NCBI RefSeq assembly: GCF_052425735.1
Contig: NC_135759.1
Location: forward strand, 45,074,001-45,138,000
Length of the DNA: 64,000 bases
Reading direction: 5' to 3'
Origin: Oculina patagonica
Lineage: Eukaryota
Within the stretch, counting starts at the first letter, position 1; every line of letters starts with the position of its first letter. Positions 5,427-49,618 of the stretch are shown in pieces. Under the pieces are notes generated by a model. That model saw nothing but the letters and a program-made list of their open reading frames with translations. It was not told the DNA's origin and made no database searches. Made by a program: the position numbers and the translations under genes.

Positions 5427-6535
5427 CTAAATCCTTTGACAAACAGATTGTAGATATTCCCACGAACAGTTACCAACGTCTACGTTTTCTAAGTCCTCCA
5501 GTAACCGCGTAAGTTTGTCAACTTTGTCTTTATCAACGGAATCGTTGCAAGTTTTCTTCAATTCTCTAATCCCCGCCAAGCCAATGTGAACTGCATTAAT
5601 ACAGCCCTGTAGTTCGAGGTATAAAGCTATGTTGTTATTGTCTCCCAGATTTGGTCTCAGCACCAACCGCATGTGCGGAAGATCTTCATAACGGTGTTTA
5701 TTCACAAAATTCGGGATATTACACATATAGTTTTCAATTCTCTCAACTGCAGCTAATGCTTCATCAAAGCGGTCGCCACTAAACTCCGTTCTCTTCCATT
5801 CTCGTGTAAAAGATGAGTAATGGTCGATCTGGACAAACCCCTGCACTTGCGAACTCTGATGAATGCTTTTCATCTTGGCAGAAATCGAAAAGAAAATTAC
5901 TCTTGCCTTAATCTCAGTTGTATTCTCTGTTCTCATGTCATTTCTATTGAAAGAACAAAAAAAGAACAAGCATTTTAGCAATTCCGATCAACTTTCGTGT
6001 TTAACTACTTATAATTTAAACTCTCTCCTATGGCCTCCCTCGAGACATGCAGTGATTTTCTGATCCTAGTAGAGGGGTAGGAACAAGTAATGAAAGTAAA
6101 CACACGTGCAATTTAGAAACAAGTGTTTGTTTATGTTATTTTTTCTCACCTTTCATGTTCCGTAGTCACGATCAAAATATCCTCCATACCAATCTCTATT
6201 CCTTCAACACTGAAATTCATTCCCTTGTCGGAGTACGTTGGTGTTTCTTTGCCGGGAAGACGGTAACCTTTGCGGGCGTAAACTGAGCAAGACAAGGACA
6301 TCAGTTCTCGTCTGGTAGAAGATTCATCTTTGTGTTGATACTTTGCTGAAGCTTCAGCGAGACCCATCAACACGGAAACTTTGCCTTCTACTTCCAAATT
6401 CATCACATAGTCTTTAACTTCTCTGCCTTGGTGACGGCTTGATGAGTAGGAACATAACGGAGAACTTACGAAATGTGGGAAGTTCTTTTTATCTACTGAC
6501 TTTTCAGCATTGCCGAGAGGAACTTTGCTTAGCAT
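5427..6535 (-). CDS. Small 2-exon gene A, ~300 aa, putative divergent stand-alone stonustoxin-type MACPF/CDC-like protein; exons 6535..6150 and 5943..5427
   Basis: ATG at 6535; donor GAA AG|GTGAGA; acceptor ttcaatag|A; the phase-2 join keeps the frame (EHE-R-NDMRTE). A paralog at 47922 has the same intron. LEVEGKVSVLMGLAEASAKY resembles the SNTX TMH1 segment; VEGIEIGMEDILIV resembles the SNTX core strand V..I.YG. Gene model is firm, product call is tentative. Confidence 0.7.
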
Positions 6536-9500
6536 TTTAAGCAAAATTTGGGTTTACGAATTAAAGTCTGGATCAGTAAAGCAGAAACTGAGATTGATCA
6601 CACACAGCCCACTCGATTTTGAAAACTACTTCAAATAACTCAAACAAATTGTCTTCAAACTAAAACTATTTAATTTCCTACACTTAAAGGTTGGGGTTTA
6701 AGTCTAAGCGGAATGATTTAAATGTCTTCCTGTTTTTCTGTTTCTATGACATCGATATATGCATGTTCATCGATGAAAACAATTATAACATATTTAAAGG
6801 GGACTGTATTCTTTTCACATCAATTACATTTTTGTGACGCTTTTAAAATGGAAATGGTAATTTAAATCATCAGTTGTGAGAACCAATATTAATCAGGAAC
6901 TTCTAAGCATTTCTTGGGCACAAAAGGACAAGCTTTGCTTTGCTGTTTCGTTGATGGATATATTGGCTATATGAACCCAGCCTTGTCAACAAAATGCTTA
7001 AATTAAACGATGGGAATTTTTTTTAAAAAATGGTGTCTGGTAAAACCAAACAAAATCGCAAAAACGTTGAGCCGAACCTCTCGAAACAGCTATTCGGAAA
7101 ATAAAACAACGAGTATAGTGTTCAGTGAAGAAATTTTGAAGTAATTTCCATGACCTAAATCACAAGCTAAACGTTTTTCTTTTCTTTTAGCACCGTAGAT
7201 GTAGACATGCATCACTAATCGTGGCAATTAATTGTATCGGCTCCCGTTAACAACTCCTTTCTGAGCCAAGACCTACAGTGACGCCGCATCTATCCAAGAT
7301 AGTAATTGAACACGATTTGTAGGGTTGGCCTTAAACCGGAAATGCCGGAAACCCGGAAAACCAGAATGCTGGAAATCCGGATAAGAAAGCCCGGAATCCT
7401 AAAACCCGGAATGACCTTTTTTGTGCACGTCTTTTCAAGATAAATACGTGGAAATAGGTTCGCCTTTACTTGGATGTGTTTTGTGTTCCTGTTTGCCAAC
7501 ACCCACGCAATGCTTGACTCCACAGAAACATCGTCATTACATACTGCAACAAGTAAAGGGGACAGGAAGATTCAGAAAGCCAAGAAAATGCGGGAGGCCC
7601 ATGCCAAACATGAATAGTTTAGCCAAATATATATGCAAAAGAAATGTTAACAGCGATCCAAGAATCTTATAATAACAACATTTTGTACGTAGTTGGAGGC
7701 ATCTAACTATGTACGAACAGTCTTCAAGAAATTTCGAGAAACAAAGTCTAGATAAAACCAATCGATTGGAACATAAAAATGCAATACGGCTCAAACAGGG
7801 AATAATTTCTCTGATCAGTGACTTTAAGATCATGCCTCAATGTCATTGCACAAGAAAACAGGAACATAAAAGCCATTGTTTAATTTTGGTGCGGTAACGT
7901 TCTTGACACTCTTGATTATTAATTGGACCGCAAACTGTTTGCAGATTCACCCAGAACGAAAGTGCAGGCATTGTTTTTTGCTTTATTGATTTTTGATTCA
8001 GGCCTGTTACAAGAACTTTTTTATCCCCAACAGACGTTTTTAAAAGACATTTCCCCACTTACAGTACAACTAATCACACAAGAAAACTAATAGAGTTAGC
8101 TTCACCCACTCAAACAGATACTCATTTAAGGAAATAACTGTCTTAAATCTTGCTTGAAAATAAGCAACCTCCTTAGTAAATTTTCCGCTATGTAAATGGT
8201 GCAATATAATTTATGCGCGGAGTTATCGCGTGACTTGCAAGGACTCTAAAGGCATTAGTTTTTTTAATCATTTGCCCAACTTTTAGTGTCAAAATCTATT
8301 TCAGTTGCGTGAAGAGTTAGTGTTGGCTGTCACTTATTTTCAATTTAGAGTAATAAAAATTATACATCTTATGCAAGGTCATTCATCGGGATACATTGGC
8401 TGCCTGGTGTTAACTAAGTGAACAAAGTGCTCAAGTTATTAGATAACAATGGTAATTTTTGAAAGAAAACTCGCCAAGAAATGTTATCCGGAATAGCGAA
8501 CTAAAGTATCACAAATATTGATCCCAACTTCTGATCCATCACTTTACCGTGAAATTTAATATATATGGCCCTCATTTACAACTCTTATGGAATTTTGCCG
8601 AGAACTATCTAGACCTATTAATTGGACACGTTAAGACACACCCTAACTAAACAATAGCTCTGCTATGTCTTCCTGTTTTTCCAAATAATAGCTTGAGGCA
8701 ACATCTCAACCTCATGAGAGCAGAATAACAGACATCAAAAAATATGCTTAACCGTTTTCATATATATCACTCGAATCATTAACGATTTTTCAGGTCTAAA
8801 TTATATTACCTACATATTTCTCTAAGATGAAGGCATCGATTTAATTTTTTGTTTGAGCTTTAGATATAAAAATCGAGCATCACTAAATGTGTCCGGCACA
8901 TTTCTTATTTTATTGACCAAATCACCAGTAAAAGCATCAACACACCCTACTGATACAATAGTTTTGTTATGACTTCCTGTTTTTATATTCCTTTTTCTGT
9001 ACTATGACTCAAAAGGACATCTTAAAGTTGTTGTAGCGAGTTATCAAATCATGGGGTTTGATCTAAATTGTAATCATGCATGGTGATGTTTTTGTGAATA
9101 ATCTATGAAGACATTTAGCTACGTCTTGAATTTTTTGACCGAATATGGAGTGTCAGAGTCAATTATACTCTCGTGGACAACCATTATTATACTTTGTAGA
9201 GAGGTTTTTTTTACTCCTTCATTTTTAAACCTCAACTAGTAGTTTTTATCGCACTTATTCTCTTTGTCCCCTGCTTTATGTCTGATTTCTGAAATGAGTA
9301 GCTGATTTCTTAAGTCAATCGTTTGTTTGTCTCAATTTTACATCTCCTAAAGTTTAATGTTATTTATCATATCAAAATTTGAAAAAGAAATGGAGCAGAT
9401 ATCGCAGAGGACGTTCCTAGGACATTAAAGCCAAATATCAACCAAAATTGGTCAAACTCTACGTGTCCACGAACGTAAAATGTTAGCTTATGTTACGGCG

Positions 9501-47921: not shown

Positions 47922-49618
47922 ATGCAGTGTAACGAAGTTGCATTTCAATACGAACATGAAAATTATAACCAATTCATTTTCTCTCCTTTGTGTTCCTTTT
48001 CTTCAGAATGTCACCGAAGAGGAGAAGTCAGAGATTATTTATTGAAAGTCGCCGTCAGTGGCGAAGTCTCCGTGTTAGGCGGAATCGCTGCCGCTTCGGC
48101 AAAATACCAGCGGAAAGAACGGACATCCAACGAACGGGAAATTATGTCTTTGTCTTCCTCGGTCTACACACGAAAAGGCTTCCTTGCTAGTGATAAAGAA
48201 ACACCGAGTTATGTCGACAATGGTATGAGTTTCAAAGTTGAGGGAATAGAGATTGGTTTGGAGGAGATTTTAATCGTAACAACGGAAGTTGAAAGGTGAG
48301 TTTACAAACTTTCAAATAGATTCACTTTTCGTAGACCGTTCCGATTCATGATCGTGAACTTGAGTACTTACTTAATAGAAAAAAGGTGTATTTTTATCAA
48401 ATTTTATTATTCACAAAATTCGCTTGGTTTCAGTGTTGTCTGTGACTTCGTGACAGAGCGAACGGAGCATCTAGTCACGTCATTATCACTGATCAGCATC
48501 TGTCGTGGACTTTGATCCACGAAATCGAAAATATTCAAAATGTTTGCTGAAGCGGATTTGACGAACTAATCGCCGGGACTGATCGGCGCAGAGATAATTT
48601 AACTACCATAACAAGCCTCGGAATTGGCTTTTCCTATCTCTACTTTTCGGTGGGGCACAACTGTTTAAGGGTCGCTGTTGTTGCTGTTTACTGTTGAGCC
48701 GAGATTTCAGTAAGACAATATTTCAGTGACGTTTTAATAAATGCCTTTACCGTTGCGTGACACTAGCGTGACCTATCCTTAACCATGGCGTTAGCCTACA
48801 GAACAGGCGGTTTATTTTGCGGGTCGAAGCGCGAAGTACTAGGTTCCTGTTCTGCAGGCTACCATGGCGTGAGTTTGCCTTCTGGCCGCAACTTATATTA
48901 TCTCCGGTGTTCACCCGCATAAAGCGACTAAGAGTACTTCTACTCTACTACAACGGGGAAATCTCCTGCGACTGCCCACTAGTCTCTCCTCTTTTCTTGA
49001 CCGCACTTGAGCTCAAATGGAAAACAACTGTTCTTTAATATAAAGTCACTTTTAATTTTAATTAAGAAATGACAGAATGCTTTTAATTAAAATTTGGTTA
49101 AATCTTACAGAGAGCAAGAAAGAACAGAGGACAAGTTAGATGTTGAAGTGAGAGTATTGTTCTTTACGATTTCTGCCAAGATAGAAAATATTCATCAAAG
49201 TTCAAGTCACAGAGGTTTTGTTTTAATCGACCATTACTCGTCCAAAACAGGAGAATGGAGACATGTCGAGTTCGATGCCAGTGGATATCAAGCCGCTATG
49301 ACTGAACTGCACAGAATCGAGGCAGACATGTCTGTTATCCCGGATGAGGTAAAAAGAACGCCAAATAACCAGCTATCGCGCTTGCGTTTTGTCGTAAGGC
49401 CATGCGCACAAGACGCCAAGAACTTTGGTGTTTTTGTTGAACTAAAGAATGAAATCAAAACTCTTCAGCTACAAATAGCTGAATACGAAGCATTCGGGGC
49501 TAGTGAAAAAACTGAACGACTTAGTAACTTACTGAAAGAGCTGCAGAGCCTGACAATCAAAAACTGCTCGTGGGAGATTTTAGATCGCATTAAGAAGAAT
49601 ATTAAACATGTTTTGTGA
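47922..49618 (+). CDS. Small 2-exon gene C, ~293 aa, diverged paralog of gene A (putative stand-alone SNTX-type MACPF-like); exons 47922..48295 and 49111..49618
   Basis: Donor GAA AG|GTGAG; acceptor cttacag|A; phase 2. Shares SPLCS, ASAKYQ, KETP.Y, VEGIEIG.E.ILIVTTE, FF.ISAK, IHQSS, IDHYSS and NCSWE with gene A. Confidence 0.75.

Follow-up and report, generated by a model that had tools for sequence, protein, structure and literature searches.

Small two-exon genes beside a MACPF-AIG1-Hint fusion gene in the coral Oculina patagonica: a plausible MACPF/CDC-like beta-pore fold

Small paralogous genes in a tandemly duplicated region

The stretch of DNA analysed here, called the window in what follows, comprises 64,000 nucleotides of the plus strand of Oculina patagonica chromosome CM126636.1, from about position 45,074,001 to position 45,138,000. 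This DNA is AT-rich, eukaryotic and devoid of N runs. It contains three paralogous two-exon genes coding for small proteins, designated genes 1, 2 and 3, as well as a long gene in which a MACPF N-terminus of the stonustoxin (SNTX) type is combined with an AIG1 GTPase and a Hint module. An annotation made from the sequence alone, hereafter the original prediction, had regarded the small proteins as divergent chains of the MACPF/CDC superfamily (CDC standing for cholesterol-dependent cytolysins) and as possible partners of the fusion protein. Unless a contig is named, all the positions given below are those of the window.

The three genes are found at 5427-6535, 10128-11236 and 47922-49618, as originally proposed, and these positions were borne out by the reconstruction of exons and open reading frames (ORFs). 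Gene 1 is located on the minus strand. Its first exon (6150-6535) starts with the ATG at 6535 and ends two bases into codon 129, followed by a GT donor at 6149-6148; the AG acceptor at 5945-5944 precedes the second exon (5427-5943), which includes the stop codon. Gene 3, on the plus strand, is composed of exon 1 (47922-48295), which ends at a phase-2 donor, and exon 2 (49111-49618, stop codon included). The products of genes 1 and 3 are respectively 300 and 293 amino acids long and share 45% identity, the former being identical to the NCBI protein ACROYT_G008275 (P0006). All the peptide strings quoted in the original prediction are present in the spliced products. Both introns are of the GT-AG type and in phase 2, the codon being cut after its second base, and the split codon specifies arginine in each case. 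The identical intron position is found at four other coral loci (L003, L004, L005 and L016). In addition, the orthologues P0002 (3 runs) and P0005 (9 contigs) are uninterrupted on Logan contigs of 1.3-2.7 kb originating from several sequencing runs. These intron-less contigs are most simply read as assembled, spliced transcripts, which confirms the splice model and indicates that the genes are expressed in relatives. No signal peptide could be recognized by eye in the coral small proteins. A trinucleotide repeat, which would read as poly-Leu or poly-Asn, occupies positions 47129-47299, about 0.7 kb upstream of the start of gene 3, in the intergenic region common to this gene and to the fusion gene.

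The original description of three genes of about 300 codons with a common phase-2 intron holds for genes 1 and 3, whereas gene 2 carries a premature stop. Gene 2 (10128-11236, minus strand) arose by tandem duplication of gene 1, whose exon layout it retains. The duplication that carries both genes extends over 2980-11558, the segment 2980-6867 matching 7681-11558 at 97% identity; the repeat measures 3.9 kb and its period is about 4.7 kb. Compared with gene 1, the sequence of gene 2 shows neither indel nor frameshift and its splice sites are intact. Nine codons differ between the two copies, of which two are synonymous changes, six are non-synonymous and one is the premature stop. Because of this stop codon, gene 2 cannot yield a product of about 300 amino acids as it stands, and the corresponding NCBI model is limited to 265 amino acids. 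Gene 2 is thus a probable young pseudogene.

The three genes initially counted are not the whole family, since a fourth intact copy beyond the window end had been overlooked; at least four members are present in the region. Underlying the region is a unit of about 35.4 kb that combines a fusion gene and a small gene and whose copies are 86-99% identical: positions 15904-34981 match 51332-64000, and positions 30634-50384 match the continuation of the chromosome past the window end (L002, 1-13492). As this unit is duplicated in tandem, a fourth intact small paralogue lies just beyond the window, approximately 6 kb past its end, at the NCBI locus G008281. It shares about 95% identity with gene 3 across the two canonical exons (98% in exon 1 and 92% in exon 2). 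In the NCBI model of G008281 another 5' end is chosen, in spite of an intact canonical exon 1. In each tandem unit, a long minus-strand gene is accompanied by a small plus-strand gene positioned head to head about 4 kb upstream, the latter being gene 3 in the first unit and the fourth paralogue in the next one. On these grounds, genes 1 and 3, the broken gene 2 and the fourth copy are paralogues belonging to an unnamed animal family without Pfam assignment.

Further duplications were seen in other corals. The L004 contig displays, at 2468-7211, three partial copies resembling exon 1 of the small genes, with a period of 2.25 kb, upstream of an intact gene. The L016 contig carries a gene 3-type copy (1984-3719) and a gene 1-type copy (10001-11085) on the same strand, 8 kb apart. 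The former copy may be broken, as its end is aligned in a second frame. Since L016 contains both types, their split predates the split of that species.

The neighbouring fusion gene and its linkage to the small genes

The long gene that adjoins gene 3, fusion gene A, extends over 21452-43807 on the minus strand. Its SNTX-type MACPF N-terminus is followed by a helical domain, then by an AIG1/GIMAP GTPase and lastly by a Hint autoprocessing module. Exon 1 (43490-43807, with the ATG at 43807) encodes the SNTX-type N-terminus. Exon 2 (40608-40762), which ends at a phase-2 donor, contains a MACPF-signature-like stretch, exon 3 (34748-34988) provides the second half of the MACPF-like domain and exon 4 (33166-33519) the helical domain. 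These four modelled exons are joined exclusively by GT-AG introns and code for 356 amino acids. The AIG1 GTPase and Hint exons were delimited as open frames at 30020-30841 and 21452-22330, respectively. The N-terminus of the fusion protein is devoid of signal peptide. When exon 1 alone was compared with the PDB, only the alpha and beta chains of stonustoxin were matched (E=0.03), and a profile of 30 sequences of this exon again retrieved only stonustoxin alpha (E=0.0017) and beta (E=0.027). Exon 2 gave a sub-threshold match to Pfam MACPF (E=0.024, 15.2 bits for a cut-off of 21.5). The bounds of the N-terminal exons recur in the L006 and L007 contigs, and the same domain order is kept at L007 10001-19217, in a compact gene of about 9 kb from another coral assembly. 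The fusion gene of the original prediction was upheld by these exons, by the stonustoxin matches, by the AIG1 and Hint ORFs and by the order conserved in L007: the neighbouring long gene is a real SNTX-type MACPF-AIG1-Hint gene.

The 3' part of a second copy, fusion gene B, is visible at 51332-64000 on the minus strand, with an AIG1 ORF at 59102-59845 and a Hint ORF at 56472-57035. Its MACPF exons lie past the window end, and its NCBI model, 869 amino acids long, carries both AIG1 and Hint. A search of the literature found no description of the small family or of a MACPF-AIG1-Hint fusion.

The start codons of fusion gene A (43807) and of gene 3 (47922) are 4.1 kb apart, the two genes being arranged head to head. 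Each of the two tandem units of O. patagonica contains such a pair, at about 4 kb. L003, which comes from another coral assembly, has an orthologue of gene 3 (76-80% identity) facing a fusion-type exon 1 in the head-to-head orientation at a distance of 3.5 kb, and a second fusion copy is located about 100 kb away on the same contig. Fusion-type genes are also found on the L004 and L005 contigs, about 96 kb and 150 kb distant from the small genes. The presence of a small gene and a fusion-type gene on one contig is therefore confirmed in three assemblies, and a fourth contig (L016, 200,255 bp) is probably shared in the same way. No fusion gene was found within 10 kb of the small genes in L004, L005 and L016, and no small gene within 10 kb of the fusion gene in L006, L007 and L008. 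In several corals, the two families are located in one chromosomal region, close pairs being no general feature. As regards the synteny in other corals on which the proposed partnership was to be judged, the L003 pair and the shared contigs are in its favor, while the six loci lacking a partner within 10 kb are not.

Mobile elements are inserted in and around these genes. Two Penelope-like copies are present at 11626-14260 and 26730-28989, with ORFs combining RVT_1 and GIY-YIG domains at 11911-13623 (minus strand) and 27223-28779 (plus strand). Both copies are flanked by inverted repeats, of 418 bp at 100% identity and of 518 bp at 98.5% identity. The second of them is lodged within a fusion gene A intron, and copy B lacks it. 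Genes 1 and 2 are located downstream of fusion copy A, past a Penelope-like element. In fusion gene A, exon 2 is separated from exon 3 by a LINE-like insertion of about 5 kb (35121-40192), which copy B (L002) lacks; the ORFs of this insertion, all on the minus strand, comprise an Exo_endo_phos frame at 38344-39090 and two others at 37328-38140 and 35326-35925. In L008, two fusion-type MACPF N-terminal genes are found head to head, 1.9 kb apart (5920-8147 on the minus strand and 10001-11531 on the plus strand), with 39-53% and 61-77% identity to the fusion N-terminus of the window. At the beginning of the window, the minus-strand region 209-2714 contains a GDSL-lipase-like ORF at 2049-2714 and an ORF of 382 amino acids at 209-1357 for which no Pfam match was obtained.

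Extent of the small-protein family and predicted fold

A word-indexed search returned 23 relatives of the small proteins. An exhaustive search of 1.8 billion cluster representatives with a profile hidden Markov model (HMM) gave 63 clusters at E<=1e-3, mostly exon-sized coral fragments. The family is distributed among scleractinian corals, with distant relatives in an octocoral, a brachiopod, an abalone (a gastropod) and a spider. The named relatives belong to Paramuricea clavata, Lingula anatina, Haliotis asinina and Parasteatoda tepidariorum and are all labelled "uncharacterized". The distant full-length relatives are 315-427 amino acids long. Clear N-terminal signal peptides were recognized by eye in three relatives, those of Lingula and Parasteatoda and the Logan relative P0061. 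Owing to its presence in brachiopod, spider, gastropod and octocoral, the family is older than the coral fusion gene and separable from it.

The main AlphaFold2 run, performed on the product of gene 1 with 48 sequences, gave a model with a pLDDT of 79.3 and a pTM of 0.75. Four long strands are predicted at residues 21-36, 75-93, 106-129 and 160-172, and two shorter ones at 177-184 and 219-226. Helices are modelled at 149-159, 185-211 and 228-299, with a C-terminal helical bundle within 185-299. The only internal segments of low confidence are residues 39-72 and 134-145. The first one corresponds to insert 1 (6320-6421, minus strand), a beta-amphipathic, TMH1-like segment lying between the strands 21-36 and 75-93. 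The second falls within insert 2 (5853-5942, minus strand; residues 130-159), a TMH2-like segment, partly helical in the model, between the strands 106-129 and 160-172. Beta-amphipathicity was evaluated on an alignment of 25 sequences as the mean hydrophobic moment at 180 degrees. The strongest signal of the family belongs to insert 2, where the moment peaks at 3.35 around residues 135-144 for a mean of 0.96 and a standard deviation (SD) of 0.47, the peak at residues 135-151 exceeding the mean by more than 5 SD. A second cluster is located at residues 50-69 of gene 1. The two segments of low confidence are thus those in which the family-averaged beta-amphipathic signal is strongest. With approximately 34 and 30 residues, these segments are long enough for membrane-spanning beta-hairpins. 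In MACPF/CDC proteins, the monomer holds the inserts TMH1 and TMH2 in a helical or disordered state, from which they refold as membrane hairpins. The order observed in the model, strand-insert-strand followed by strand-insert-strand, is the MACPF/CDC layout as far as the predicted structure can be relied upon.

The gene 1 model was compared with the PDB using Foldseek, and 12 of the top 13 matches are cholesterol-dependent cytolysins. Listeriolysin O comes first (E=2.3e-3, prob 0.72), with 4hsc at prob 0.75, followed by pneumolysins and suilysin. Stonustoxin beta occupies rank 11 (E=0.029, prob 0.60, 312 columns, TMq 0.30), and anthrolysin and the complement component C9 come after it. Hsp70 substrate-binding domains do not exceed prob 0.11 with this model. 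In the viral library, nothing was significant among the top 50, where the best TM-score (0.31) and the best probability (0.33) were obtained by an Orpheovirus protein with a MAC/perforin domain. A first AlphaFold2 run, on gene 3 with 19 sequences, had given a poor model (pLDDT 62), counted as a weak replicate only. Foldseek nevertheless placed first, for this model too, components of the membrane attack complex (MAC), pleurotolysin B and listeriolysin, with Hsp70 substrate-binding domains at similar scores. The structural check suggested with the original prediction ranked cytolysins, stonustoxin and C9 at the head of the list, all of them below the significance limits.

Sequence comparisons gave marginal results. 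A profile of 15 sequences (A3) matched stonustoxin alpha in the PDB at E=0.024 and stonustoxin beta at E=0.63, the one better match being a coiled coil. The alignment with stonustoxin alpha (profile positions 41-135, residues 52-152) is in the register of the parallel drawn by the original prediction. In order to compare the small family with the fusion N-terminus, a fusion-family profile was assembled from five N-termini spliced via their shared exons, plus 30 fragments of exon 1. With hmmsearch, the small family scored 3.4 bits (E=0.0018 for one target), the match being divided into two colinear parts. With hhalign, P was 0.021 for the exon 1 family of 30 fragments and 0.01 for the five spliced N-termini, aligned over 210 colinear columns. 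In the hhalign alignment, the phase-2 introns of the two families are only six residues apart (codon 125 of gene 3 and codon 158 of the fusion gene), a proximity for which the probability of coincidence is roughly estimated at 4%. MACPF proteins are marked by the signature motif Y/W-G-T/S-H-F/Y-x6-G-G. The coral small proteins keep one nearly invariant glycine of this region (G116 of gene 1), located in the strand VEGIEIG and aligned with the signature-region glycine of stonustoxin and of the fusion protein. At the aligned place, an aromatic-x6-G-G remnant was recognized by eye in the distant relatives P0054, P0061, P0064 and P0072. Taken together, the stonustoxin and fusion alignments and the proximity of the introns are suggestive of a MACPF link, short of proof. 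For the proposed parallel between the small proteins and the fusion protein, as for the likeness to stonustoxin, the sequence scores are low and vary with the profile chosen.

A candidate pore-forming module and its rival explanations

The reading that we favour, with some hesitation, is that the small proteins may be a compact, stand-alone module of the MACPF/CDC type that inserts two amphipathic hairpins into a membrane. The underlying MACPF/CDC-like beta-pore fold, based on a predicted structure, is plausible and the best available reading, not an established one. The module would consist of a core of four long strands, two poorly ordered amphipathic inserts at the places of TMH1 and TMH2, and a helical C-terminus. 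The soluble monomer would oligomerise on the membrane, where the two inserts would refold into beta-hairpins and enter the bilayer; alternatively, the small protein might cap or modulate such an assembly. We infer for the small proteins homology to MACPF/CDC proteins, pore activity and a role in immunity. The tandem cluster formed with the fusion genes fits a shared defence role and does not show a physical partnership.

A series of results weighs against this reading. Pfam produced no match for gene 1, gene 3 or 25 family members, MACPF being missing even at E<=1. The gathering score of Pfam MACPF (PF01823) was not reached by any of these 25 members. No recognised MACPF protein was returned from the 1.8 billion representatives by the HMM search, a comparison of the family profile with a collection of 5.8 billion proteins revealed no bridging MACPF-annotated protein, and searches of the PDB with single protein sequences gave nothing. 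The complete signature motif is missing from the coral small proteins, in which no membrane-targeting domain is visible. Pfam likewise detected none of the accessory SNTX-like domains (FAT-like, thioredoxin, PRY-SPRY), a C-terminal helical bundle being all that is predicted. In the structural searches, no Foldseek match reached E<=1e-3 in the PDB or in the viral libraries, and the TM-scores (0.18-0.31, for a root-mean-square deviation of 8-15 Å) are in the range of unrelated folds. The stonustoxin alpha match falls to E=3.4 with profile A4 and vanishes with A2 and with A6 (25 sequences), and it is therefore treated as non-robust. The hhalign probabilities amount to only 2-4%, and no sequence test of the small family against MACPF was significant. 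The assignment of these proteins as divergent MACPF/CDC chains accordingly draws on their layout, their amphipathic inserts and the Foldseek ranking, and is held back by the want of any significant structural or sequence match.

Comparison with known systems indicates where such a module might belong. SNTX works as a dimer of paralogous chains. Stonustoxin alpha/beta (PDB 4WVM) is the sole PDB sequence match of profile A3 that is not a coiled coil, in a colinear alignment, and in the Foldseek comparison with the PDB its alignments are the longest (312-322 columns) and its TMq values the highest (0.27-0.30). Like the coral small proteins, it lacks a signal peptide and has a helical domain after the beta core. 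Unlike them, it is about 700 amino acids long, for about 300 in the small proteins, in which no thioredoxin or PRY-SPRY domain was detected and the signature region is reduced to one conserved glycine. Possibly, the small module is closest to this stonustoxin branch. The cholesterol-dependent cytolysins (listeriolysin O 4CDB, 4HSC, pneumolysin) give the best Foldseek E value (2.3e-3) and the best probabilities (0.72-0.75). Their membrane-inserting segments are short, about 30 residues, a length similar to that of the inserts of the small proteins. These cytolysins are, however, bacterial, secreted proteins of about 470-500 amino acids with a cholesterol-binding domain 4, and the structural alignments with them are limited to 6-11% identity and TM-scores of 0.18-0.25. 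Complement C9/MAC and the Pfam MACPF (PF01823) proteins recur in Foldseek for both models and have two inserts between core strands; they differ from the small proteins by their PF01823 match, by their ancillary domains and, as far as coral members are concerned, by the signature motif. A conceptual likeness can be drawn with the two-component CDC-like toxins of Bacteroidota, in which a long chain serves as a membrane platform recruiting a short C9-like chain, the two genes being side by side (PMC11169675). The long and short genes are neighbours there, as are the coral fusion and small genes. These toxins are nonetheless bacterial, extracellular and activated by proteolysis, while the coral pairing is kept in part only.

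This last precedent is relevant to the partnership foreseen by the original prediction, namely that the small protein serves the fusion protein as a short partner chain or as an inhibitor and co-oligomerises with it through homologous MACPF cores, in the manner of stonustoxin alpha/beta, of C8/C9 or of the long and short CDCL chains. Such a two-component system, though attractive in view of the stonustoxin and CDCL precedents, appears improbable. The head-to-head pairing in both O. patagonica units and in L003, the contigs shared in three assemblies and presumably in a fourth, the lack of signal peptide in both would-be partners and the bacterial example of a long platform chain recruiting a short one all speak for it. 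The two O. patagonica pairs, however, result from one duplication event and do not represent independent conservation; the partner is missing within 10 kb at L004, L005, L016, L006, L007 and L008, and the same-contig distances rise to about 96-150 kb. In addition, the existence of relatives in brachiopod, spider, abalone and octocoral, three relatives being secreted, argues for an independent and older function, and the small family is no closer to the fusion N-terminus than to the stonustoxin of fish. In a more elaborate version, the small proteins would act inside the cell as the polymerising short chain of a two-component pore, with the fusion protein, Hint-processed and GTPase-regulated, as the membrane platform that recruits them. 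Corals would then possess a cell-autonomous immune executioner, to which secreted proteins of other invertebrates would be related. This version is speculative and still less probable than the simpler partnership.

A different explanation is that the small proteins are not pore formers at all and adopt a new fold, a beta-sheet followed by a helical bundle, serving another purpose in the cytosol. In that case, only generic long twisted hairpins would lie behind the matches to cytolysins and MACPF proteins, and the genomic neighbourhood would reflect the clustering of fast-evolving, duplication-prone genes. We judge this rather unlikely, even if it deserves to be taken seriously: all the structural and sequence matches are under standard significance, TM-scores of at most 0.31 are those of unrelated folds, Pfam is silent, the first model drew Hsp70 substrate-binding domains at scores similar to those of the pore formers, and the region is rich in recent duplications and retroelement insertions. 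Against a new fold, one superfamily dominates the top of the PDB list for two independent models, the best TM-score of the viral library belongs to the sole annotated MAC/perforin protein in the top 50, the segments of low confidence fall exactly at the two TMH positions, which are the most beta-amphipathic parts, and the Hsp70 matches drop to prob 0.11 or less with the better model. A gasdermin-like architecture, with an N-terminal beta-rich pore domain restrained by a C-terminal helical domain, had also been mentioned at the outset. Like gasdermins, the coral proteins appear cytosolic, and their lack of signal peptide, beta-rich first half and helical second half confer a superficial likeness. 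The order of strands and inserts, on the contrary, fits MACPF/CDC, and no structural or sequence match to gasdermins was found. Given that the top 50 Foldseek PDB matches of both models contain no gasdermin and that no Pfam gasdermin match exists in 25 members, this fold was rejected as extremely improbable.

The small genes adjoin an unusual MACPF-GTPase-Hint fusion in a fast-duplicating cluster. Should the fold fail, the small proteins would still constitute a conserved, transcribed family deserving a structure determination. Should it hold, they would rank among the smallest animal MACPF/CDC-type modules known to us, with a core and a helical bundle of about 300 amino acids and no targeting domain. 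They would then represent a new branch of the perforin-like superfamily and a candidate effector of coral innate immunity.

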